Assembly (NCBI GenBank): GCA_964187785.1
Contig: OZ076412.1
Location: 15,128,001-15,192,000 of the forward strand
Direction: 5' to 3'
Source of the DNA: Amphiscolops sp. MND2022
Lineage: Eukaryota
DNA length: 64,000 nt
The notes under the pieces were generated by a model. That model had not been told where the DNA came from. It saw nothing but the letters and a program-made list of their open reading frames with translations, and did no database searches. Position numbers and translations under genes: made by a program. This document shows, piece by piece, positions 17,001 to 59,804 of the stretch; the first letter of the stretch is position 1, and each line of letters opens with the position of its first letter.

Positions 17001-20000
17001 AAGAAGTTGAGAAGGTAGCATGTTTTGGCTTTCGAAGTGTACATTCTCATCTCTCCCGACAGTGGGGAGAGATGAGAATGTACTTGAGTATTTCTTGTTA
17101 ACTGATACTTAATGCAGATTTCAACACTTTTTAAAATACGTCAAAAACATTGATGAATATTGGTGCACTTAACTACGTCAATTGAACAGCTCTGCGGTTG
17201 CTTGAATGTCTATCGATAAGTTTTCAATGAGACTTGTCTTCCATTTTCATTTTTTGACAATTTTAACACTTCTCAATCGCACACTCAAAACATCATAAGT
17301 CAACGTCAGGTTAAGATAGAGAGTTTTTCTATAGCCCATTTTTCTCGTCTATCAGAGTACTTTCCTCATGCATCCACTTGCAATCTAAGTTGTAGGGAAG
17401 TTTCTTACCTTTGGGCGGCCTGAAGTTGAACAAAAAAGTCAAGTCGAAAAAAAAACATTTTGAATGTTCAAAGTCACATATTTTTTCACCGGCAATGCTG
17501 GTAGGCTAAAAATGCCGCAAATAGGCTAAATGGTCTCGTTGAGCAGTAATTTGGGCAGAAACTACCCACTGTGACTGTATCTTTGAAAATTTGGGCAAAA
17601 ATGGTAGAAATAACTTTTTTTCGAAAAAAATTCTCGGAAATTTGTCTATTCCTCACGTTGTTTCCATCCGATTTGCGCCAAAATTGCCCTGCACACTCCC
17701 CACGAACCGTTGAACAATATTGTGGTCCACGTCCGAATCGCTCCGAGAACTCTGAGACAAGTTATGAGGTCATGATTGAGAAAAACTGAAAACTGAAAAG
17801 TCGTTTTTTCTTGAAAAAATAGGGTTTTTCGGCATGACCAAAGATCTTTTCGGCAAAACATCAGAAAAAAAGTGCTGAGAATATCAAGTTGTGCACGTGT
17901 GCAAAGTTTCAGCCCAATCCTGCGGACAGTTTTCGAGATCTTACTCAAAAGTTTACATTTTGGATATGGTTGTTATTTAGCTCCGCCCTCGATCTCGGGA
18001 TAGGGGCCCTACCCATCCCTCAGAACAATTTTTGGGGATTCCCCCACTCACCCAGTCATACGATTTTGATGCCATTGCGCACGCAGGGGCCCCTTTGGGT
18101 GTAGAATGACTGTGCAAAATTTTATAAAAATCGTATGAACAGTTTTTGAGAAATTTGAAATTTTCATGAAAAGGTCGGGAGAAAAAAAAACAACACGATT
18201 GCATAAGTAGTCGAAAATTTTTTCCGACTCCTAAAAATTATCTTGATTATCTCCGATACAACAAACAGATGGAACAACAAAATGCTATTTCTCGTGGAAT
18301 GATCTAAGATTAATAAAATTTCCAAAAAAAATCTTGACCGCTTAAACTTTGCAACTTCTTGGTTTTTATATTTGATTCCGAACTCTTTCATCCAGATAAA
18401 TAAAATTTTCCGAGAAAATTTTCAGAATTTTCCGAGTCTTGAATTTGCTTTTTTTTCAGCGGGACACTGGCTTTGAGATGCTCTGAACTTCTTGATTTCA
18501 ATGCACAATGCTATTTCGAATGAGCAGTTGAAGTTTCTTTGAGACCAACCTTGTGTGCATTTTCTCACAATCTGCATAGTTTTTGTTAATCTTTTGTCCT
18601 TGAAATCTTGCTGCAGTGTTTTTGAGGCTGTTTCTTGCAACCAATGGAGTATTTCTCTTTTTAGGGTTGCTTTAGCGCTTCAGCGAATATTTTCACGAAA
18701 GTGTTTCATCGAATTTAATAACCAATATTATCCTTCCTCATTTTCTTTCCCCGTCGCCTCCGTTTTTAATTTTCGAATCACAATTTACGATTATGGACTT
18801 TTCAACAATTGTTTCCACTCATGAACTGATTGACAATTTCAAGTCAGTTTTTATCACATTAAGCAGAGTAAATTTAGTGGCTGAAAACGTTGAAAGGAAG
18901 AAAATATAATTGAAAACAACGGAAGCTCCATTTAAAATTAATGAACACAGGACTTTGTTGAAAATAAAATGCACTGAAGCACGAAAATTGCCTTGGATTG
19001 TTTCTCACTTTATCTTAATAAAGCCTGAAGTGTTATGATGTTGCAAAATGACGCTCTTTAAAAATAAGATGAATGTAATCTTGTGTCAAATGAAAAACAA
19101 ATATCGGTTTCTCAACAACCAAGGTCGAGAGAATTTTTTTACAAAACTATACAACCATCTAGAGTTCTGGAGTTCAGCAAAAAAGAATGCAGAAAAATGA
19201 GAAATGAAAAGTCCAGTACATGTTGCTGGTTCCGCTAACAGCATTATCTGAAAATGAGTACAAAGAGGTGTAAAATTTTGTGCAATTAACCTGAGACAAT
19301 TACAAACCAGTTTGGGATTGCGATATTTTTTGTATGTAGTTACAAAGGGACCTTGTCTGCTCTTTTCCGAGCTGAAAATAAAAACTCCGAATTTGTGATT
19401 TATTTTTTTCGAGAAAAGTTGAAATTGTCAAAAATACCCATATGTTTGAACAAAAAAATTTTGAGCAGGGACCTTTTCTCAGTTGAAAATATCAAGAAAA
19501 TAGTTTTTTTTCACCAGACCACAGAACTTCAGCTTTTTAAGGACTTTACGCCTAAAATCTAAAGAGTAAAATCGCCTAAATCTAAATACGCCTAAAATCT
19601 GAAGAGTACTCGAATTTACCGAAATATCCCCCTTGATTTTGTTGATTTCCAACCTGAACTTCCAACCTCACGTTTCTGAAATGGCGAATCAAGGGTGGAC
19701 TGGAGAAACCGGCTCATTCTTCAACTGAAAAAACCTTCAACTTTGAACGCTACACCTTTCTAATTATAAGTCGGACTTCCTTCTAGGGAAAAGCTTCGAC
19801 TTGCTTCAATGACAGCCTTTCAAACTGTTCAAGACTTGAGGCCCGTTGCTCGAACAGTGTCAGAGTTGTTAGGCGGCGCTTCCTGTGAGAAAACGAAGGC
19901 TACAGTGGTTATTTTTTCAAGACCCCACGAACTGACAATTTTGTTACTTTCCGACCCCATGTTTGGTCTACTTGGCATAAAGGTAGCAGAAGGCTGTTGC

Positions 20001-20542: not shown

Positions 20543-21030
20543 AGTCGGCGCTTTTCTTACGAAAAGAGCCCGACTATTACAGTCACTCGTTTTTTTTTCT
20601 TTTTTTTTTATTTAAGACAGACTCGAAGCGACGAACGTTAACGTTCAACTAAAGGAAACTAAATACCAGGGAAACGCATGTAAATTATTCCAAAGGATCC
20701 CCCCTTTGGTTTTTTACTTTTTAAACGTTACCTACAAGCCCGGGCGGGACTGAAGGGTTCCCCTTTCGATTTTTTTTCGGCACTGTGCGACTTTTTTTTG
20801 AAATTTTTTTAATGTCCCCAAAGTATCCCCCCTTTGAGTTTTTTGTTATTTTGCTACATAATGCGTGTTTATAAATCAAAAAGGGTCCCCCTTTTACATT
20901 TTTTGGCACTGTGCGACATTTTCCGAAAGAAAATTTTTTTTTCGAAAATTTCAAGTTTTTTTCCAAAAAAAATGTTTTGCGCTTTTTGAGCCTTAGATAT
21001 AGCGCCGACTTGAGACGTTCCCGTCTTGTT
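20543..21030 (+). mobile_element. HINE/DINE-1-like non-autonomous element, family 2
   Basis: 5' hairpin AGTCGGCGCTTTTC..GAAAAGAGCCCGACT preceded by a T-run. 3' end is GCGCCGACT followed by a small stem-loop and TTGTT. Confidence 0.65.
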
Positions 21031-22123
21031 CAAGCTTGCAATTAGCTCATTTTGCCGCTTGTAACTCTTCTGCTAGAAAGACTGAATCTTCCCGAAATAG
21101 GAGTCAAAATTGTCAGTCTGAGCGGCAATGAGACAATTTTTATAAGATGAAACTTGTATTAGGACATGCAATGCCGACTGGCTATTGGCCACTTTTGGGT
21201 TCTATCCACCGTGAGATATCTTGCAACACCTTCAGAGAAAAAGTGTTGTTCGCGTGAAGCGTGCCTTGAACTAAATCTTGAATGGATCAAAAGAAGAGAA
21301 TTTTCAAAAAAAATGATGTTAAAGAAAATATACGAAGCATCGGATTTGATTGAAAAGTTTATGTACAAATTACCTGATATGGTGTTTAAGCTACTTTACT
21401 TAACTACTAAAGCCCATGAGAGAAGTGATGATTTGACAAAAATGAATGCGAGTTAACTAAAGTTGGTTGTTAAAACGACTAGGGTTATTTTCTGAATCTA
21501 ATGTTTTTAACGCAATTTGTCAGACCAAAAATAACGCGTAATTAACTATTCTGTCACAGTTCTTATAGTCGCTATAGTTTATGACAATTTTTTGAAAATT
21601 AGCTAGTAGATTCGCAAAATTGAACCTAGAAGCGGTTTCAGGTTGAGCATCATTTCACAAGTCAGAGTGTTTCAGTTTCCAGGGTTGATACAAACTCGGT
21701 ATCTCAGGCCTCAGAGTCAAATGACTTGACAAATACAAAAACATTCGTAATCATCTACAGCTGTTTCAACACTTCCAGCATAAAATGACTTTTTGATATA
21801 GTTGTTCAAAACATGAAAAGTTGACTCCTGGAAGAAGTCAAAATTGCATAGAAAGACCTCTACTTTAATGCATATTTTCTCAACCATAAAATAGCTTTTA
21901 TCTGTGAATGAATGCAAAAGATTATGTCGACAACCTTTGTTTATCTGACTGGAATTTCATAGCAAACTATGTCGACATACTGGTATTTGAACCTTGTTTC
22001 TTATTTAAGGGGGATAAGAAACATGGTCGAAAAAAAACGATTTTGAAATTTTCCCCATGTTAACTCAGTTAACATGAATAAATAATAACACGCGTTATTT
22101 TTTAACAACTCTGGAGCTAACAA

Positions 22124-31276: not shown

Positions 31277-31967
31277 TTGGATACAGATAGTCACATTTTT
31301 ACGAAGTCTCTGATCGACCTTCAGATTACCCCTAGCAAACCGAAAACTTCACTCATGACAAATGTTATCGGTGCAAGTTCACTAAAACGAGCTTTACAAA
31401 ACTTGGATTTTGATAACCGAAATACCCTTGGGAACTTTATCACAGCCATTCCTTCTTTGAGCTTGAACCCCTATGTTCAGTGTGATACGCTCAAATTGTC
31501 TTTTCTACTGGATCATGGTATTCTTAAAAATACGAATCAATTAGTTATTTGGCATGACATTCTGAACAACTCCTTGACTCCCCATAAATCAAATAACAAT
31601 ACAGCTCTTACCCCTAAAGAATTAGCAACTGAATTGTTAAAATATAAATCACGTATAACAGCCTTAGTCTATTGTGAACGTATTGGTGCACCCCATGCAT
31701 TTGATGATCTTCGTGATCAAGATTTCATTGTTATTCGAGTCACCGAAAACCTTCTTTCTCGTAGAAAACAATGATATTCCTCTTTTGAATGAATATTCCC
31801 GACTTCATCCAGTAGCGGATATTGAATTAAAGTCTTTGTTCATTGTTTTGGAGCACCGAAACAATCTTAAAGCTTTATCCCAAAATACAAGAAGTCCCAG
31901 CAAGAAACCTTCTCAAAGGAAAAGAAGATTGAAGAAGCTTTTAGAGCAGAGTTTGAAGTCAACTTAA
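31277..31967 (+). pseudogene. Extra ORF upstream of gag inside the BEL element; SGNH/GDSL esterase-like (one frameshift near 31770)
   Basis: 165-aa ORF plus an overlapping 97-aa frame. Motifs VIGASSL, AIPSLSL and VIWHDILNNS are spaced like SGNH blocks I-III; the fold is inference. ORF start is TTG in the track. Confidence 0.55.
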
Positions 31968-48970: not shown

Positions 48971-51275
48971 CTGTATGGAAAGAAACCACAAAGGTAAATG
49001 ATCAAAAGTAAATTTCGTGGCAGGTATTCTTTGACGATGCAACCGATTTCAAACTTAGGAAATCGATGAATAGCGACGAATAACTTTGTCTTAGAATCAA
49101 AGTTTTCTTAGGAAATGACAACCAAGAAATGAAAAGAAATCAATGTTAAATATTGAACTGAAAAATTTTAAATTCACATCGAAAAGGGACCAAAATCACA
49201 AATTCCAACCCGACGGTACATCATTTTTAGCTGGTTTGGTACTAGGGCGTGTGAATGATCAGCAGTACCTGCTACACTGCTAAAGCATCAGATGAGACTG
49301 AAAAATGAAAAGCAGCATATGTTGTTGGTTATCTGTCAAAAAGCTATTAATGTATTTTCAGATGACTGATGATGGCGTTTAAAGTCGAAAAGCTTCTTAA
49401 CAATGATTTTATCTTTTACACGTTGTTGATTACTTGAAAAATACACAAGAGTCACGTCGAAAAAAAAAGGAAATTATCATCATTTTTAAATTTCTAGATA
49501 ATTCAAAGCCTTTCTGTGGTGATGAACTTATCAAACAAATATTTGATAAGTTCATGACGAATGATTTCAAAAATTTTTATTAGAACTGATGCACTCAGTT
49601 GCAACACGTTCCCCCTTTGAGCAATCCAATCTCTTCCGAGTTGAGCGAAGAAAACATCTCACAACAATCCCTTGGTTGCATATCAAGACTGTGCGAAAAT
49701 TCGCAACCGAATCAGTTTCAAGATTTCGGATAATGGGTAGAATGACAGAGTCAGTTGTAATTTAGCACAACGTCAAAGTTACATCTCTCCCACTCATCCA
49801 ACTGTCACTAGCACGCCGACCCGCGCTAGTCCATTACTAACCCAAACCGTACTGTTTGGTCAAACCTTGCAAGAAAATGAATGTTTTCATCAGAGCTCAC
49901 AAATAATTAAAAATCTTCGCTCTGAAAAGCTTTTAATTACGATTTCTCCCCGGAAAAAAAAAGCCAAACTATCTCAAACGTTGCCATTTTCGTTCAACAA
50001 TATAGTTGAACTTTCTAGTACGTTTTCTGCTTTTTTTGAATTTGAAGTTTCAACTTGATACAGAATGGCACCGTGATTATGTGGAAGGTTACACTCTGAA
50101 AAAAATTCATATCAACATTGTGGGGAGATTTTGGCTTCCTAGCGAGCTTGAAGAAATCATTTGGAAACAAAACATGGTAATATTTAACAGAGCGCCAAAT
50201 ATCCCATTATGGACACTGTCCTACAGCTTTCAATCAAAGAATTTGTTGACAATTACGCTCTGTCCATCGAATGACAAACCATTTATTGTTCTTCATGTCT
50301 TACTTTAAATGGTTGCTCTGCTACCCTTTCTACGCATAAGGAGATAGATTCCCCTGAAAACGTCAAACGCTCTCGTCCAGAAGATATTTCAACTATCGAG
50401 TTCTCAAAGAGAGCTTTGACATCACATTTCCAATTCCATCGATTGAAACTTGGAGAGTCGTCGTTTATTGAGCATTTCAATTGCTTTTTTTCATTGATTT
50501 GTCAACTCGACTTTGGAGGTTGAAAAAACATGAAGTTGGAATTTTCAATGCGCGCGCATTTACGCAAACCTTTAGTTGACGATTCGACCGAAGCGTTCCC
50601 AATTTACACAGCAATTTTACACAGCAATTTGACTTTTTGGGAGGTTTTGGATCCTGCAGAGATAACACTTCCAATGTAAATGCTATGTTTATAACTCACT
50701 TTGTACGTGATGCTCTGAAGAATGAATCCCACTAATGAAAGACTTGAAACCTCTTGTAAATTATGGTGGATGCATGTATATTATATACTGAGAGAGAGTT
50801 AAGTAGATTATTAACTGAGAGTCAAGTAGCTTATCATCTCGCGTATAATGCTTTTTCGACATGTCTTCAATAAACTTCATCCCAGTGGAAGCGCTTCACC
50901 AATTCGATTCGGTGAAACACAACGTAACAGCTTTGTCAAATAACTTTGTCGTCATAATGTCAAAATTTTTTTTATTTTCCATCGAATAACTCGTATTGTC
51001 GAAGTTCTCGATTAAGTAGTTTGATCGTTTCATCGCACAAACGAAGTTCCTTAACACCTCGCACAATGATCGCACCTCGGGCTGTCAGTGATTTTACATC
51101 ACGGGTTTTCGCAAAGTATTTTGTCCTGAGTTTTTGGATGCAATTTTTTCCAACGTGGTTGTTTTTTTCGGTGAACATTTCGGTAAAAATAATACGACCT
51201 AATCATTTGTCAAGTATCGATTCCAAAATTCTTGTTTCAAAAGGTAAATAAGTTTTGCATTGCTTTCCCAGGAGT

Positions 51276-54200
51276 ATGTCTCCGAGACGCGCTCGCCGAG
51301 TCATAACTACGTGTTCCCGGTGTGTTTATTCCTCAAAATGCCACCATATGTTCATCATGTACGCCAATTTCTTTGGAAGAGCCAAATAGTTTGCCTAATA
51401 CTGATGGTGTCCCAAATCTTGTTGAAAGCATGCCCCAGCCTTCAACCAGTGATGACTGTGCCTTGTGTGCAGTACATGAAAAACACAATGGTTCCCTCTG
51501 TGAATTTTGTTCAACAGCAACCCTTTCAAATTATTCATCAGAAGACTGTCAAAAGTGTCGAAGACGTACTTCGTTGCCTCTCAAGAATGTTTCAATGAGC
51601 TATGTGAAAAAGACCTTATTTGGTTGCGCGCTACCCGGAGAGCAAGAGGTTGCAAGACTGTGTGAAGAGTGTTCAGATTATGCCGTTAATGGTCATAAGG
51701 CGTCTTGGTCCACAGTGTGGTCCAGTGTTATTCTGGATTTCCTTTGTGGGAAATATAACGGGACTACACCGGGAAGACAATTTCACCACCTCTTACCACC
51801 GACTATTCTGAAGCAATATCAACATATACTATAAACTGAAATTTCTGTTGATGATTCAGTTTTTGACGATTTAACACCAAAGCTATTTGAGTTTCAAACT
51901 CTGAAAAAAAATTGAAAATTGAGGATATAAAGAAGGCGCACAACAAATACTGTTTCCCTGATATCCGCTGCCCTTTTGGCTGTACAGAGTTTGTTGGCGA
52001 GACTGGTCGAAACCCCATGCAATACTTTCGTCAAAAGTTAGATCCGATGTTTGAATTCAAAGGAACGAATTGGAAATTGCGCTTACGATGTGTTCCACCC
52101 GACTGGCTATCCCCTTACCCTCACAATAACGTCTTCAAAGTCAAGCCCCATCTTCTGATTGACAGCATTAAAGGTTTGTGCATTGCTACATGCAAGTTCC
52201 ACAATGGCAGCTCCAGCAAATTTTTTGTTCATCCCCCAAGAAATCCAACTGGACGCCTACCTTCCAAATACCCGAATCGCCTCGGTCCAGCCACTGTTAG
52301 TTATAACTGCTATAAACCGGCTAAGCCAAACTTTTCTTCTCACTATTAATCCATGGGTGTTGCTAAAGGAGGCTTTTCTGGTATTAGTTCAACTAGTATT
52401 GCTTGTAAAAGAAGATGGGACGTTGCTTTTGGAGAGGACGATGTTACTAGAACTAGAGAGGCACCCATGTTAACCCCATCTTACAGAAACTGGTGCACAA
52501 ACGTGAATTGTCGCAAAACCTTTTTGACATTTTGACAGCGTTACATCTTGTGAAGGGATTCCGGATAGCAGTGAAGTCTTAAGATGTCTACAAACCACAA
52601 CTTCTGTTCCTCTAGAATTAGATATGGCGTTGAAGACAATACAAGAACAAGGGTTACATATCACCTACTTTCCCAGTTTTGCCCATCCACTTAGTGATTA
52701 CGACTCAGACCCCCCCGATTTAGCTGTGACAAATCTTTCCTCGCTTTACATATGGTGCTTGACAGTAATGTTTGCACTCAGTTGCACTTTCCACAAGAAT
52801 TTACTGAACTCAATTCAAGATAATTGTTCTTTTGCTGAAGTTTTCATCCTTCTACTTTGCATCAACGAAAAACCACCGTCACCTAAAAGAAAACGTCAAG
52901 TAGCGGAGTTACTTCAGTCAAATGCATGTGATGGAAACACAGATGTAGTCGACGATCTCGACCAACTGCTCTCCAGCATCCCAATCGCTAAACGCGTAAC
53001 TGTAGATGAACGTGGAAGCAATATTTGATTCGGCCTGCAACACCAAAGTTGTCACTTTCACACAAAAAACAAGAACAAGAGCCCATGAGTCCTTTTTGCC
53101 CGATAGAATTTCTTCCAGCAACGGACCTAGTGTATATGAATTGAGATCAGTTACAATAAAAGAAGGAAACACTGTCAAAACAGTCGTCAGGTATGGAGGT
53201 CGATATGGCTGCTGGTGGCTGTACTCCAGTTGTGTCAAGGTCCCTGGAAAAATTGACGTGGATGACAATGCGCTCCTTACTCAATTTCATAATAATTGGA
53301 TAAGTTGCCACTACGAAATGATCGATTCACTTGACTTGCAAGAAGGTGTCAGTATTTGGAGTATTTGAGAGGCCAGGGTCGATTTGTTTGGGAAAAGCAC
53401 AACATACCTCTGACTGTTAGTAGGCAAAAAACAAACACCACTTGTTCGTTCAACTCAAGTTGTCGAAGAAAAGCTGCATGGCAATGTCCATCGGACGAGT
53501 GTCAATCGGCAGCTTGTCGTACTCACTTCAACATTAACTCACTCAACGACAATCGAATACAAGTCAGGGCCCCTTCAGCAGCTGCCAGTGTGTTGCTCTC
53601 AAGTACAAATGAAGAATGTGACGAGGATGACTATCTTTCGGAGCCTGAATCAGAGGAAGACCCATTTTCTTTTACAAACTTTGTAACAGACGCCGGCAAC
53701 ACAGAGAGTACCAACTTTTCTGCTACTGATGCTGGTGATAATGCTGTTGAAATGGATAATGTGATTCAGACCAAGCCAACTCACGTCCTGTTTAACACAG
53801 ACTGTCATATCCTACAAAGAAAGCAATTGAGAAATGAGCGTCGAAAAACATCCTCACAATTTCTGCAAATATTGTTGCCTCTACACCAGGTGATTCGATA
53901 CCCTTTGTTTACCCTGATGCATCTTTGTTTCCAACCTTATTTTATCATGAGCAAAACGACGGAACTATGACTGGTGCTCTCCCCGCTCCTCTTTTCGGTG
54001 ACAAAAAAAGCGAAACCTTCACCTTTGCAAACATTGAAGACCATAAGTGCAGTTCTGTTTTAAACCCAAATTTACTATAGTCCACTGATTTGAGAAGTAT
54101 CCAAACAACTTTCGACACTGTTTTGAATAAACGCTCATCTTGTTCTGACACCCGATTGGTTTTGAACCGAGGATTCCAAGAGGTGTCATCAAAAAGTTCC

Positions 54201-57200
54201 ATATACATCACACCGACATATCCAAGAATTCATTTCGATAAAGCTGACTCCAGAGTTCGTGTAAACGAACTGGCCGCCCTTTTATCGGAAGAACCAGCAA
54301 GCTTTTTTCTTACACTTACGTGTAATCAGAGAGAACATTTTGGTGTAGCACCAATCTTCGAAGCTCTAGAGAAGCGTTTTGCCAGAAACAAGCCGATACC
54401 AAAGCTTTGTAACTGTTCCAAATGGTACTTTTAACGAGAGCTTGGTACCGTTCTGCGGAAGCTTTGATGGAGTGGATTGAGAAGTCGCCCGAGAAACCAC
54501 TTGAGCAGTTACAAAGCTTTGGTATCGGTATGAATTCCAGTCCACAAAAAGAAACTTGCAGCATATCCATGCTGTTATCTGGACGAAAGAATCAAAACAA
54601 GAACTTCAGTTCAAATATTTGTGCTCCGGATCATCAGCTTTGTTTGAATTGAAGAAGCTTTCTGTAGAAACCAATTTAGTAGATGTTGACAAAATACAGA
54701 AAGTTTGGAGTGATTTGATGACAATCCAGACCCACTCTTGTGAAAAAGCAAATTATCGTTGCCATAAAGTTGTCAAAGATGATGGGTCGAAAATGTGCAG
54801 AGTGCCGCGTTATCCTCAATCACGGGAGTATTCGTGGAGGAAAGTGCCTTCATATCATTCCGACGAGGCCTTGTTGAACCTGTTCCGCTTGGACCTTGCT
54901 GTGCCTTCATCAAGTATAGACAATACGTTTGATGTGTCCCCTTGACTCCAAGGAGGCAAAATCGAAAACCCGGCTTCTAGCGATGAGCATTTGTCACCAT
55001 TCAACACTGTTATTCCTTGCTTCAAAGTCATCTCAGAACCTCCAGCTGTGTGATGAATACTTGTCTGTGAGATACATAGCAAAGTACGCTGCTGGTATCG
55101 AAGAACGTGCTGATTCAAAAATTGACCCTGTATCTTTCAAAGAAATTAAAATCCAATCCAGTGGCTTGAGAAATGTAAAGATTGCTGGATGTAAAATCAA
55201 AGCCAAAACGAACGAAAAGAACTTAGTGCAAATAATTCCCCAAGTGGAAGCAGTATGGTGGTTATTGGACTTTAGATATGTGTACAGTTCTGTTCCGTTT
55301 AAGCATTTGTCAACACACGAGAAAACCGAACGCGGAGCTTTCATCAAAATCCACGCGAGGACTAATTCTCTCGAATTTCCACTCGCCATTCTCAAGACTT
55401 TCAGTTTTCCAACTTTTCGACTCAATTTTCCAACTTTTCGACAGTTTACAGAATCCCAATTGCTTTTACTGAAAGATTCGCTGTCCAGTGAGTACACTAG
55501 ATGCAAAATTAGTTTTCAGCGGTAGACCCCAGCCCTAATGTAGATAACCCTTGCCTTTATTTCGAATGGTTCAGTCGTGTTGCAGTCAAACGTCCCGAAC
55601 AAAACTGAAAGATAGTGTGAATACATCACAATGGATCGACGTTTTTGGCTGTGCTGTTTATCTATGAAGATGTTACCTTGAAGAGTTTGAAAACTACATC
55701 CTAAAACTCACACAAGAAGGTCACCACAATTTACAGAAGTTTGATGCAAATACAACAATTTCATTTCTTCAACAAGATAGGTCTCAAAACAATAGGGGAT
55801 CATTCAGTTCAAGTGGTCACATCCAACATTGTTCCATCGAACCCATTCAAATCTCTGGTCCACTTTGTGTTGTCAAACGGACATTTCGAGACAAAAGTTG
55901 ATCTTTCAACCAGGAAAACATGTTAGAAGTCTTCAAAAACTGTAAACTTCTGCAAAACAAGGAAACTTATTCACAAGAAGATGCCTGTTTTAATAAAGCA
56001 CTACGTATTGAAAGAACTCAAGTACCTGCCTGGTGCAAGCCGCTCGTTTGATCGCCATTCAGTGTCCAGCTTCAATGTATTTTCTGATCTTGTCGCAAAC
56101 AATTCCATCCACACTGAAGCCCTACCATCAACACCGCATTGCGAAATTTCGGGAAACGCCGAAATTGATTTCATTGTTCATCAAAATGAAAAACGTGAAA
56201 GATCTATCCAGGGTTGTTAATTGAACCCAGCTCTAATTCCCTTACAGAATAACAAGAATTTCTTCAATGCCACTCGTGAGAACCCATTTACTTATAACTT
56301 CCCCTTCTCTAGAGCCAGCGGTCGGTCGGAGAATTCTTACAACTTTGAACAACGGGTTTTCGAGAGTTGTCTACAGAAATTAGACAATTACATTCAAGCA
56401 ACAGACGGTTTTGTCAAACATCAAATGTTTTTGGGACGTTCTGGAAGTAAAACACTAGTGTGCACATTGATTTTTCTACGAGCCATTGCCAAAGGACTGA
56501 ATTGCGCTATCACATGCTTGAGTGGTGAACGAGCTCAACAGTTAGGTGGAGAACACGTGCACAAAATGTTTAAGTTCATAGTAAACAGAAAACAAGTTTC
56601 TGAGATTATGGCCAGTCAAAGCGTCATATTTCTTCTCCGAGATACGTTTCACGGAACTAGAACGTCTGAACGTATTATTTATCGACGAAATAGGACAACT
56701 GAACGTCGAAACACTCAATGCTATGGAACTTGTCTTACAGAATGTGCGCGACAATAAACTACCAATGGGTGGGGTCTTCACCATAATGACGAGATCCGAA
56801 GCAGTTACGTCCTCCCGATGGCTCGTTGATTTGGATTTCCCCAAAACTTCTGACTAACTATGACTTCCAGTATTTCAAACATTACGTTCGTGTAACTCCA
56901 GGACTACTACGACAGCTACTTGCGAAACTTGACAAGATATCAGCCCAGCGGAAGCAGCCGATCTTGCTAAAGAAAGTAATGCCAATTGCGTCATTAAAAC
57001 AGCTCGGGAAGATACTGATGATGACTTTGCCATGCGCGTGTTCAGCACTAGAGCTTCGGAAAAGGAGGCTGTTTCGAAACATTTTGCGAAAATTGTCGCG
57101 GACCAATCTCTTCCTGTTGTCACCCTCACGGCGAAAGATAAAGAAAGCTCAACTGGTTCATCAATCTGGCTCCCCGCTTCTAAACAAAACTCCAACTACA

Positions 57201-58222
57201 TTGATAGCAATTCAATCACTTCGAAGAAAATTTTACTTTACAAAGGGTCTTTTTTCAGATTCACGGCGAATCTATCTAATATTCAAGCCAGACAGGGTCA
57301 ACTATGTGCAGTATTGAATCTCCCTGAAGAATCTTCGAATGTCCTTGAAGTGTGGATGCACCACCGGGATGCCGTTATATAACTGTCATCGATGAAGCAT
57401 CTCTTTTAGCGCAAGGTTTGCGCAAGGCTACCATTTCTAATGTCTACACACCAATTCACAAGTTTGAGAGACACTTTTTCTAAAATAGTGACTAAAATTT
57501 TATTGACTGAGAGAAGTTACAAAATTTGGGAGAAGGAGCAATTGCTGGTTTTATTGAGTAGGGTCAGTAAACTGGATGATATCACATTTGTTGGAAGTTA
57601 AGAAGTTAAGAAAATTTGGTATCAACATTAACAGCCGTATTACAGAAGCCATCATGTTGGAGTGATTTTATTCAAAACTTCTTTGAGAAGTTTTGTTCCC
57701 CGGCAATAGCGCCAAATGTCCCTTCTCTAAACCTTTTGACAACCAACTTCGTTCCGTGGAATGTAGTTTTACCTGAAGATGACACTGGTTTTCTTTTTCT
57801 ACTAATCAGCACTAAAATGAAAAACGTGTTTTTATTGGAGAAACCATTGCACTCCGTCGTGCATTAAAAGACATTAACTGTGGCGATGGGGATCTTGAGA
57901 CACGTCCGATTGAAAGGAGACCTTGGGGCTTGCTGGCATTCATCACAGGTTATTCTCATTTTTCTTCAACCATAACTTTCATGTAGTAACTAGGTTGACA
58001 TTATCGTATTATCCGTTCGAAAATAAAGTAAAGTTTTCGTGTTTAGGTTTTCCAACAGACAACTCGTCACTAAAGACAACTTTGAGAAAAAGTCTGGCGT
58101 CCAGTTTCAAAAATAGAGCCTCATCAATCGGTCCCAATATAAAAATTGCTATTTTGGAATCAGCTGAGAAGTCTTGGAATTTTCAACCATCAAAACCTTA
58201 CGAACTTGCGGCTTATACAGTG
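51276..58222 (+). mobile_element. Decayed Helitron-like (HLE2/Helentron-type) Rep-PIF1 helicase-GIY-YIG reading frame; element termini not found
   Basis: Rep motif I FFLTLTCN (~54305). Motif II LWYRYEFQSTKRNLQHIHAVIW (54518-54583). Motif III YIAKY (~55075). PIF1 motifs GRSGSKT, LSGERAQQLGGEHVH, LFIDEIG, PMGG, KQLRPP, LLVLLSRV. GIY-YIG at 57781-58030. Many frameshifts and stops. Confidence 0.9.
57781..58030 (+). pseudogene. SLX1/UPF0213-like GIY-YIG nuclease domain, in the same broken reading frame as the helicase
   Basis: GFLFLLISTKMKNVF / IGETIALRRALKDINCGDGDLETRPIERRPWGLLAFITGY (1-nt frameshift in a T-run), then ..YPFENK in the next frame. Confidence 0.75.
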
Positions 58223-58780
58223 TAGGCACTCTTGACTCGCAATCACGAACAAAAGCTGCTGAGGTTGCCCGGGTCACGCAGTGAGCCGTGGGCAAGCTCC
58301 TTGTGGAACACCAAACACATATCTCGTCCACATTAATAATATAGTTGCCTCTTCTGTTATCCTCCACTGTCAATAAATGTTGAGAGTGGTGTCTGGCTCT
58401 CTATAGGGCACTTACAGCTCCACATCCTCAACTTTATTGACAAACACTTGTTTGTGCCCTTCCAATAAACTGAATTGTTTCGAAGAATTGACTACTGTTG
58501 CATTTTTATTCAATAAATTCAATGGTTTATTGTTTGTAATTTTAAAACACTGTTAGTAAAGCAAATTGTTGTGTTCAAAGGAAACGATCCACAATTGTAA
58601 AAACAACCGTAAAAGAAGACAGAAAAAAAACTAACCATCAATTCAGTTTCTTGAAAGACTATTTGTTTTGTAGGTTCGTTGAGGAATTTGGTAGATATCA
58701 TTATTGAATGTGTGAAACGTGTTATATGCCAGTGTGAAACTAATTTATTTATTTTTTTTCAGAATTCTACTGCATCCAAA

Positions 58781-59382
58781 ATGCCAGTGAATAATCAAGA
58801 CCTCTCTGCTGAAGAAGCTGCTTCGCGCACTACAGCAAAGCTTACGTCAATCCAAATTAGTGAAATTTTGAAAGGCCAGTGTACCGATACAAAATATCTG
58901 CATTGTAACGTACTGCACGCGAAAAAATGTGTGAAGGCTATTTCATACTTCAAATTCAAGAATGGAAAGAAGCAAAACTGTGAGCTGTCCGAAAAAAGTG
59001 TCATTGCCTGATTTCCTCCACTTCCACATCCAAACGAAAACCTTGACCTTGTCGAAGGTCGATGCTGTAGGGAATGTGCAATGGAGTTTTTTGCGACGGG
59101 CAACCAAAAAGCGATTATCCTTGCCTTGAGGTGGACAACGGAAAATCAAGTTGGGTTCTATCGGCTGACGTGACTTGTGGAGAACTGCATTACAGTTCAA
59201 AAATAGGGTCTAGGCAATTGATTAGATATTTTGCTCCTAAGTGTAAGAACGCTGACCCACACAAACGAGAGTTTGACGTGCTTGACCTCTCAGATTCGGT
59301 TGAAAAGTGTGTCGAGAAAGTGAATGCAGCAAGTAGCTGGCAACTATTCGGATGGCTCAAACCGACTGACACTGCACTGTAG
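58781..59382 (+). pseudogene. Disrupted Cys-containing ORF of unknown function downstream of the Rep-Hel frame
   Basis: Polypyrimidine-AG acceptor at ~58762, then ATG 58781. One stop (59011) and one frameshift; ends WQLFGWLKPTDTAL*. Confidence 0.45.
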
Positions 59383-59804
59383 GCTACTAATTATGATCTT
59401 GATGTGCATGTCATATGCATCCGCCCTCTCGTTCCCGGTGAAGTTACGGCTGATTAGTTCTTTCGATGCCATGTTTTGAATATAGTCAATAGGAGATTTC
59501 TGCTTCTTGTATTGTGTTGCCGCTGCGTTGTTCTCTTTCGTCGGTTGTTCCTTTCGACCCAAAACACATTTGGAAAATGTGCAGAAGCTACATTTTAATG
59601 CAAAACAAATGCAAATGCCACTCTCTGGTATTCCGTCCTTCGAAGTTAGAAACAGATGCTCAATCAATGTCCGGCAAAACTAGTCGATCAGATTAATTTA
59701 GGTTGAACCTCAGTTACAATTGTCGGAAAGTATTGAATTCTGAATGCACCTTAATCATTAGTAAACATGGATGACAATTGGCATACATTCAGTTCAGTAT
59801 GGTT

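Follow-up and report, generated by a model that had tools for sequence, protein, structure and literature searches.

Here we describe an element in a stretch of 64,000 nucleotides from Amphiscolops sp. MND2022 (contig OZ076412.1, positions 15,128,001 to 15,192,000 of the forward strand), which we refer to as the window and whose own numbering is used throughout. The region from about 50.6 to 59.45 kb is very likely a single copy, old and dead, of an autonomous rolling-circle transposon of the Helitron-like type that belongs to a distinct, deep-branching family. It is what is left of a new variant among these elements, in which a Cys/His-rich N-terminus, an HUH Rep endonuclease of the Y2 type (two catalytic tyrosines), a PIF1-like helicase and a GIY-YIG nuclease are joined in one open reading frame (ORF). 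This fusion is real, and is seen in about 60 intact proteins.

The piece of the window that hosts the HUH motif (54505-54942) retrieved 97 proteins at E<1e-3 from among 1.8 billion with HMMER, the best match being P0001, a protein of 2,268 amino acids (aa) that is 68% identical. Two word-indexed searches added about 60 further members of 1.3-3.6 thousand aa. On the long matches, Pfam places Helitron_like_N, PIF1 and, at the extreme C-terminus, GIY-YIG within a single ORF, and this single family protein is 2,100-2,800 aa long. The GIY-YIG model (PF01541) scores 28.9-38.6 bits against a cut-off of 22.6, and Helitron_like_N matches with the C-terminal half of the model only. A Pfam census of 20 members found PIF1 in every one, GIY-YIG in 17 and Helitron_like_N in 14, with weak OTU matches in two; Exo_endo_phos, RPA and, at E<=0.01, DUF6570 were absent from all 20. 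Where Pfam makes no GIY-YIG call, either the C-terminal motif is still visible or the ORF ends exactly at an intron, and in an hmmalign table of 63 rows the motif is C-terminal in nearly all long members.

An earlier, sequence-only reading of the window had proposed the Rep-helicase-GIY-YIG fusion from a single broken frame, and about 60 intact relatives keep that architecture. It had also asked whether intact copies lack the nuclease or encode it separately; in intact ORFs the domain is in-frame at the C-terminus. The profile searches that it recommended gave a divided answer. PIF1 and GIY-YIG are recovered from intact relatives, but the pieces of the window are too weak to decide (GIY-YIG at E=0.16, PIF1 at E=0.21 and no Helitron_like_N). 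These pieces are short and decayed and therefore yield no firm Pfam calls, so the domain calls rest on the intact relatives.

The decayed gene itself occupies positions 51276-58222 of the + strand and is colinear with intact proteins of 2,270-2,400 aa. When 50.5-59.6 kb of the window is compared by blastx with intact relatives, the read-through begins at the start ATG (51276), ends near 58138 and covers residues 1-2295 of P0108 (2,328 aa); identity to each of eight intact proteins is 50-54%. The series contains at least 14 frame switches and three in-frame stops, at 54078, 55924 and 56218. Position 58222 closes the final codon of exon 2 and the stop codon follows at 58223-58225. This colinear series bears out the earlier claim of one broken + strand frame of about 2,300 codons. 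The motif strings quoted with that claim were all found on the + strand where they had been placed: SFFLTLTCNQ in 54081-54431, WYRYEFQSTKRNLQHIHAVIW in 54505-54942, RYIAKYAAG in 54920-55522, GFLFLL from 57787 and IGETIALRRALKDINCGDGDLETRPIERRPWGLLAFITGY in 57816-57983. The window holds one copy of the element gene.

The domains follow one another along the gene. Positions 51276-53867 (+) encode the Cys/His-rich N-terminal region, recognized by blastx and by invariant alignment columns and equivalent to about residues 1-875 of the relatives. Across the family this region measures roughly 850-1,300 aa, is conserved and has many invariant Cys and His residues; Pfam and PDB searches matched it to no known domain. 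The broken HUH Y2 Rep domain spans 53868-55540 (+), based on its motifs, blastx and Helitron_like_N in relatives. Its three motifs can still be read in the window: motif 1 (FFLTLTCN), the HUH motif (EFQ..HIHAVIW) and the tyrosine motif (RYIAKYAAG). The PIF1-like superfamily 1B helicase domain, also broken, spans 56221-57600 (+), based on motifs, blastx, PIF1 in 20 of 20 relatives and PDB matches; its Walker A is degenerate (GRSGSKT), while LFIDEIG and the helicase motifs are still recognizable. In a full-length alignment of 20 members H1111/H1113, Y1282-x-x-K1285-Y1286 and both Walker motifs are invariant. The family thus has the two-tyrosine HUH Rep of Helitron-like elements in the broad sense, with a PIF1-like helicase C-terminal to it in the same ORF (PF05970 in all 20 members).

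The nuclease domain is split in the window. Exon 1 (57787-57948, +), assigned from motifs and alignments, is separated from exon 2 (FPTDNSS..., 58047-58222, +), assigned from motifs and an alignment with relatives, by 98 nucleotides with stops (57949-58046, +), and the domain is out of frame with the end of the helicase. Such an arrangement would be expected if the GIY-YIG sequence were a chance neighbour, or a fragment of host SLX1 captured by this copy alone. That explanation is refuted by the dozens of intact ORFs that carry the same domain in-frame at their C-terminus, and we give it practically no credence. The interruption is a conserved phase-1 GT..AG intron, found at the same position in loci L001 and L005, in both of which exon 2 is open. 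In L001 the P0001 ORF stops right after '...AFITG'; about 105 nucleotides on, after a TTTAG acceptor, 'FPTDNS...' leads to '...QCGSI*', the end that is typical of the family. The P0102 ORF in L005 stops at the same intron position and is followed by an open exon 2 of 58 aa. The close relatives P0103-P0108 have no intron.

The earlier reading had assigned this last motif to the SLX1 type, an assignment that both sequence profile and fold support. A profile of the family's C-terminal domains finds SLX1 first in PDB (4xlg, 3.3e-12; 7cq2, 1.6e-11), then At-HIGLE (7wme, 6e-10), with SLX1 6seh (6e-8), bacterial UPF0213 (7e-7) and UvrC (0.26) lower down. An AlphaFold2 model, built from an alignment of 27 sequences headed by P0104, has the right GIY-YIG topology, a beta-beta-alpha-beta-alpha core (pLDDT 90.9, pTM 0.82). 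With Foldseek, structure prediction being one of the checks that had been suggested, every one of the best 11 PDB matches is SLX1 or At-HIGLE (E 3e-6 to 1e-3, TMq 0.52-0.58) and the top 24 matches among Swiss-Prot models are all SLX1. Other comparisons gave less: phmmer with the 56-aa nuclease piece of the window found nothing in PDB, and NCBIfam returned only sub-threshold matches to group-I-intron endonucleases for the domain.

The likeness to SLX1, a structure-specific endonuclease subunit that acts in repair, and to the plant protein HIGLE extends to the GIY tyrosine, the YIG tyrosine, the arginine (R36 of CgSlx1), His-Asn, RPW, GF, the glutamate of F-E-x-x-W-Q and the long helices that follow the core; the family domain runs on for about 60-70 aa past this core, through two helices and one short strand, and then ends. 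Unlike SLX1 and HIGLE, however, it is fused to a helicase rather than free-standing, is only about 20-30% identical to them and has no RING/PHD finger. The matches span SLX1 residues 1 to about 130 only, and the C-terminal RING/PHD zinc finger that binds SLX4 is absent. The lack of this finger speaks against capture of a host SLX1, and because of it the nuclease is best described as a predicted SLX1-like domain and not as an SLX1 orthologue. Two further groups share the URI/GIY-YIG domain. Bacterial UPF0213/YhbQ proteins differ in that they stand alone at about 100 aa and match less well (7e-7 versus 3e-12). Penelope-like elements differ in being reverse-transcriptase elements; they show that mobile elements can recruit the GIY-YIG fold as an integration nuclease.

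The catalytic residues of the window copy are largely gone. Its GFLF has Phe for the GIY tyrosine, a frameshift falls inside the YIG tyrosine codon, and LRRALKDIN has Ala for the catalytic Arg and Ile for the His. The catalytic Glu column has Ala in the window, Gln in L001 and Glu in the intron-less relatives. With the SLX1 alignment as reference, most clades, including the Styela and Perkinsus proteins, keep the full set of Y, Y, R, H, N and E; the 'Q/K' that appears in the Glu column of the P0008 and P0100 groups is an alignment offset. The clade of the window, in a FastTree phylogeny in which the window copy was represented by its pieces joined with X rather than by a repaired or consensus sequence, comprises nine members, and only P0104 retains every catalytic residue. 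P0105, P0107, P0001 and P0102 have Arg to Ser, with Glu to Gln in addition in P0001; P0103, P0106 and P0108 have Tyr to Phe or Cys, Arg to Cys or Glu and His to Ile, similar to the 'K-D-I-N' of the window. A second clade (P0110-P0112, P0130-P0135) has a strongly degenerate nuclease domain.

In the subclade of the window, then, the active site is eroding even in intact genes, and there the domain has probably ceased to act as a nuclease. Since most clades keep the full set and some intact ORFs have lost residues, the nuclease is ancestral and under selection in most lineages, whereas some, that of the window among them, can dispense with it or use it in trans. Copies of this subclade may depend on other lineages. 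The earlier suggestion that a rolling-circle lineage recruited a flap nuclease therefore stands for the family, and probably fails for activity in the lineage of the window, because several of its residue changes are common to intact close relatives.

How the family relates to known Helitron groups is a separate question. A family profile of Rep and helicase scores members at 617 bits or more, and the next proteins, canonical Helitrons, at 51-114 bits. Canonical proteins reach 110-190 bits with Helitron_like_N and up to 216 bits with PIF1, in contrast to 23-33 and 32-59 bits for the family, whose Rep and helicase are thus far more divergent. The Rep motifs nonetheless align with those of four canonical Helitron proteins, with family-specific insertions. 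The string W-x-R-x-EFQ, which had been taken for a Helentron/HLE2 signature, occurs in none of these four comparators and is simply a trait of this family; its status as such a signature was not confirmed.

Compared with HLE1 and its representative Helraiser (PDB 7lcc), the order of Rep and helicase is the same, and so are FLTLTCN, EFQ..PH.H, the H..C..C finger and the two tyrosines. The differences are that HLE1 has no nuclease domain, and that the family Rep inserts 2 aa in the HUH motif and about 20 aa before it. In PDB the family Rep-helicase profile is no closer to the Helraiser helicase (E=1.4e-18) than to bacterial Pif1 (E=6.7e-23). By these scores the family does not cluster with HLE1, and the shared unit of L006 and L007 described below does not have TC...CTRR ends.

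With Helentrons (HLE2) more is shared. Both have a giant ORF with an HUH Y2 Rep, then a PIF1-like helicase, then a C-terminal nuclease domain, both have accessory cargo of OB-fold (probable in the family) or OTU-like type, and both have copies beside tandem repeats. They differ in the nuclease, which is an SLX1-type GIY-YIG in the family and an apurinic/apyrimidinic (AP) endonuclease (Exo_endo_phos) in Helentrons, in the lack of a detected DUF6570, and in the zinc-rich N-terminus of about 1,000 aa, which is unique to the family. The earlier phrase 'instead of an AP endonuclease' was right in that all 20 members surveyed lack one and have GIY-YIG in that position, but the descent from Helentrons that it implied is not shown.

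Could the family simply be an already sampled subgroup of HLE2, with GIY-YIG as one more captured domain? The HELIANO paper (2024, PMC11417382) reports a GIY-YIG domain, called 'captured', in the HLE2 family HelenSM92 of the moss Sphagnum magellanicum, which has terminal inverted repeats and TT sites, and mentions unclassified clusters of Helitron-like elements as well as OB, HIN and Ssb-like folds among HLE2 cargo, the same folds to which our leads for a second gene (described below) point. The language-model search gives some further encouragement, the nearest named clusters to the pre-Rep and Rep region being of HLE2 type, Helitron_like_N with DUF6570 (score 0.89, a lead only), and the OTU-like matches in two members fit as well. 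Against this, the HLE2 marker DUF6570 (PF20209) was found neither in the 20 members at E<=0.01 nor in the window pieces at E<=1, Exo_endo_phos is absent, and a gap of 617 versus 114 bits separates the family from any canonical Helitron protein. The nuclease is moreover fused in-frame and conserved, from tunicate to alveolate, across clades that are only 25-30% identical, which is not the pattern of sporadic capture. We consider such a subgroup a possibility to be taken seriously, though not one that we would favour.

HelenSM92 shares with the family a GIY-YIG inside a Helitron-like element, and may or may not share the fusion to RepHel, the SLX1 type or kinship. It is the only published mention of this kind that we found in full-text searches of the literature. 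Those searches of papers found no description of a Rep-helicase-GIY-YIG family, of an SLX1 affinity or of the spread reported here. The fusion, for which the earlier reading knew of no described family, is not wholly new to the literature, as PMC11417382 mentions GIY-YIG for HelenSM92.

A bolder alternative would add the family to HLE1 and HLE2 as a third major lineage of rolling-circle transposons in eukaryotes, marked by an in-frame SLX1-like GIY-YIG, a zinc-rich N-terminus of about 1,000 aa and a second gene for an OB-fold protein; its origin may be an iteron-plus-hairpin sequence on satellite units of about 1.3 kb. We put this forward tentatively. Our FastTree phylogeny had two fragmentary canonical Helitrons as its sole outgroups, and its deep branches are not to be trusted. 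Because of this, and because DUF6570 is absent yet the language-model neighbours carry it, HLE2 membership of the family is no more than a possibility. The more probable reading remains the distinct, deep-branching family of Helitron-like elements named at the outset.

The named members of this family are Styela clava LOC120338934 and four partial proteins of Perkinsus olseni in NCBI (P0151, P0152, P0156 and P0013); others come from JGI and Logan samples, the Logan protein P0141 being almost identical to P0151. Nine ENA members that were looked up (P0001, P0008, P0012, P0032, P0102, P0130, P0131 and neighbouring copies on L003 and L005) fall on seven loci, all in assembly ERZ25074608. Its contigs reach 1.5 Mb at about 100x coverage, and it looks like a eukaryote genome in which the family has radiated extensively. 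The tree shows a multi-copy, multi-lineage radiation that includes decayed copies. The spread across animals and an alveolate, Perkinsus olseni being a parasite of molluscs, hints at horizontal transfer or great age.

The Styela protein is annotated as an ordinary gene model, and no termini are defined for the family, which are two reasons for asking whether this is a host gene that has been domesticated, or a replication gene of viral origin left as an endogenous viral element. Genomes with the family, however, host dozens of diverged and near-identical copies, some of them tandem, nested or decayed and with repeat arrays adjoining. The flanks of the loci hold no capsid or other viral genes, and the proteins have Helitron-type Rep motifs in Rep-PIF1 order. 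A host or viral gene is therefore very unlikely, and a transposon remains our reading.

Helitron-like elements in the broad sense have defined termini with a 3′ hairpin and make no target-site duplication; HLE1 inserts between A and T, and HLE2, which has short terminal inverted repeats, between T and T. As for the ends of this transposon, a k-mer scan found no shared terminal inverted repeat of 11 nucleotides or more among copies. Evidence on boundaries comes from L006 and L007, two copies of about 90% identity that share a unit of 10.5 kb with a sharp left and a fading right junction. This unit starts TGTTCTC and has no CTRR end, its boundaries being accurate to within a few nucleotides; both left flanks end in T, and the right boundary is diffuse. 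A motif near the 3′ side, GGCACTTACAGCT, was considered as a terminus signal and rejected, as it is missing from L003-L005.

The element extends beyond its main gene on both sides, with homology upstream to at least 50614 and the relic of a second gene, ORF2, downstream to 59451. Window 50614-58442 aligns by blastn with L001, which holds an intact ORF of 2,268 codons, at 64-75% DNA identity. The 5′ non-coding part (50614-51275, +) is delimited by blastn against L001 and against L005, and by alignment. It contains a block of about 55 nucleotides, some 0.5 kb before the ATG, that is about 85-90% conserved with L001 and L005 in elements otherwise about 66% alike. This block (GAAACCTCTTGTA..TATGnTGGATGnATGnATATTnTATACTGAGAGT) lies at 50746-50800 in the window, 6440-6520 in L001 and 9449-9529 in L005, and may be a promoter or other cis element. 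Within the gene, an inverted duplication (54393-54528, no strand; found by a repeat search and as a blastx gap) has arms of 26 nucleotides at 54393-54418 and 54503-54528 that are 96% complementary and 84 nucleotides apart. It falls precisely where Rep motif 1 and the HUH motif are broken apart, and there stands in for about 10 codons (a blastx gap equal to P0108 residues 1050-1059), and it looks like a local rearrangement of template-switch type in a dead copy.

The ORF2 relic lies at 58781-59451 (+), as located by tblastn and alignment. It is 55-67% identical to ORF2 of L005, with frame changes and an internal deletion of about residues 71-142. Elsewhere ORF2 encodes 308-464 aa and is found 0.5-1 kb downstream of the Rep-helicase gene (RepHel) in L004 and L005, and near it in L002 and L003; between clades it is 22-25% identical. 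Neither Pfam nor a sequence search of PDB gave a match. A language-model search gave one lead, which places ORF2 among the OB-fold binders of single-stranded DNA (POT1, CTC1, CDC24, MEIOB and Ssb-like proteins); a divergent ORF2 gave no signal. The AlphaFold2 model is poor (pLDDT 44), and its Foldseek matches, none of them significant, are all OB folds (HIN-200, LEF-3, CTC1, RPA70). On balance, these leads make ORF2 a probable OB-fold DNA-binding protein, by a modest preference.

A mechanism can be proposed from these parts. The Rep would nick the DNA and bind covalently to the element end, the PIF1-like 5′-3′ helicase would peel the strand away in transposition of rolling-circle or peel-and-paste type, and ORF2 would coat the single strand. 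The fused nuclease would make a second cut that Rep does not, either by nicking the target strand or the complementary one, or by cleaving a flap or other branched intermediate. Its position and presumed role would be those of the AP endonuclease in Helentrons, which is located after the helicase.

Several points weigh against an autonomous, nuclease-assisted Helitron-like transposon and should be considered together. Helitron_like_N is marginal in the family, at 23-33 bits against a cut-off of 28.9, and the family Rep profile does not reach the Rep of Helraiser in PDB, where the helicase alone is matched. Rolling-circle transposition is deduced from the protein and not from termini or a target site; the mechanism likewise derives from domain identities. 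Catalytic residues have been lost from intact ORFs in several clades, including that of the window, which shows that the nuclease is not indispensable for persistence. Lastly, the leads that point to an OB fold for ORF2 fall short of significance.

We also made some observations on the surroundings of the element. A tandem repeat family of about 1.3 kb adjoins RepHel units of three clades. It is found in L001 (34-5076, 16368-17441), L005 (4595-6754, 19809-26822), L006 (300-3500, 21100-27056), L007 (570-4600, 20880-26400), L004 (17159-17796) and the window (17039-17768, minus strand), the last being a partial unit without the core. This core, near-invariant and located at the junctions of repeat units, consists of two or three CAACGCC iterons followed by GTCCGTrGGCATGCCGAGGCATGCCyTTCGACGACGTATGCC; this last sequence contains the palindrome GGCATGCC twice and folds to a stem of 8 bp with a loop of 4 nucleotides. 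A second hairpin block lies at unit positions 1065-1139, and the rest of the unit is 67-80% alike. The iteron-hairpin repeats look like a rolling-circle origin or the terminus of a non-autonomous partner, and may be linked to the termini of the element.

RepHel-ORF2 units that are only about 66% identical stand head to tail in L005 1-18866, and L003 1-26521 is nested in a more complex way, with an N-terminal fragment of RepHel at 20672-21457. The head-to-tail units suggest a preference for insertion into each other's neighbourhood or into arrays. In both L006 and L007 a tandem repeat of about 295 bp, with about 5-6 units, occupies 17650-19350, in the part of the 10.5-kb unit that runs from the RepHel stop to its right end, a stretch in which no ORF2 was called. 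Finally, an ORF of 181-190 aa (MQVTVIGASSL...LWHDVISNS), SGNH/GDSL-like by eye and without a Pfam match, accompanies the OTU-bearing RepHel lineage in L002 (3655-4200) and L003 (1786-2358, 22739-23311). Its counterpart in the window (31352-31765, +), with a match of 27-30%, is an ORF upstream of a BEL/Pao element, and this small gene seems to ride on two unrelated types of element.

The role of the Helentron endonuclease is an open question. That an ancient and separate Rep-helicase lineage carries an unrelated nuclease fold in the same place is an argument that a Rep-independent cut is mechanistically needed. Sister lineages that keep or lose catalytic residues with their ORFs intact provide a natural experiment on this. 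The Pfam models used by annotation tools miss or barely catch the family, so that many of its copies in animals and protists have probably escaped annotation. Its intact members might be developed into a new DNA transposon system that is nuclease-assisted and takes large cargo. Should the family prove to be a third lineage, it would be old or mobile enough to have reached both animals (an acoel-like host and a tunicate) and alveolates (Perkinsus). An end-processing nuclease would then have been recruited twice at the same position, once as the AP endonuclease of Helentrons and once as the GIY-YIG domain of this family, and such a repeat would suggest that this mode of transposition needs a second cleavage.

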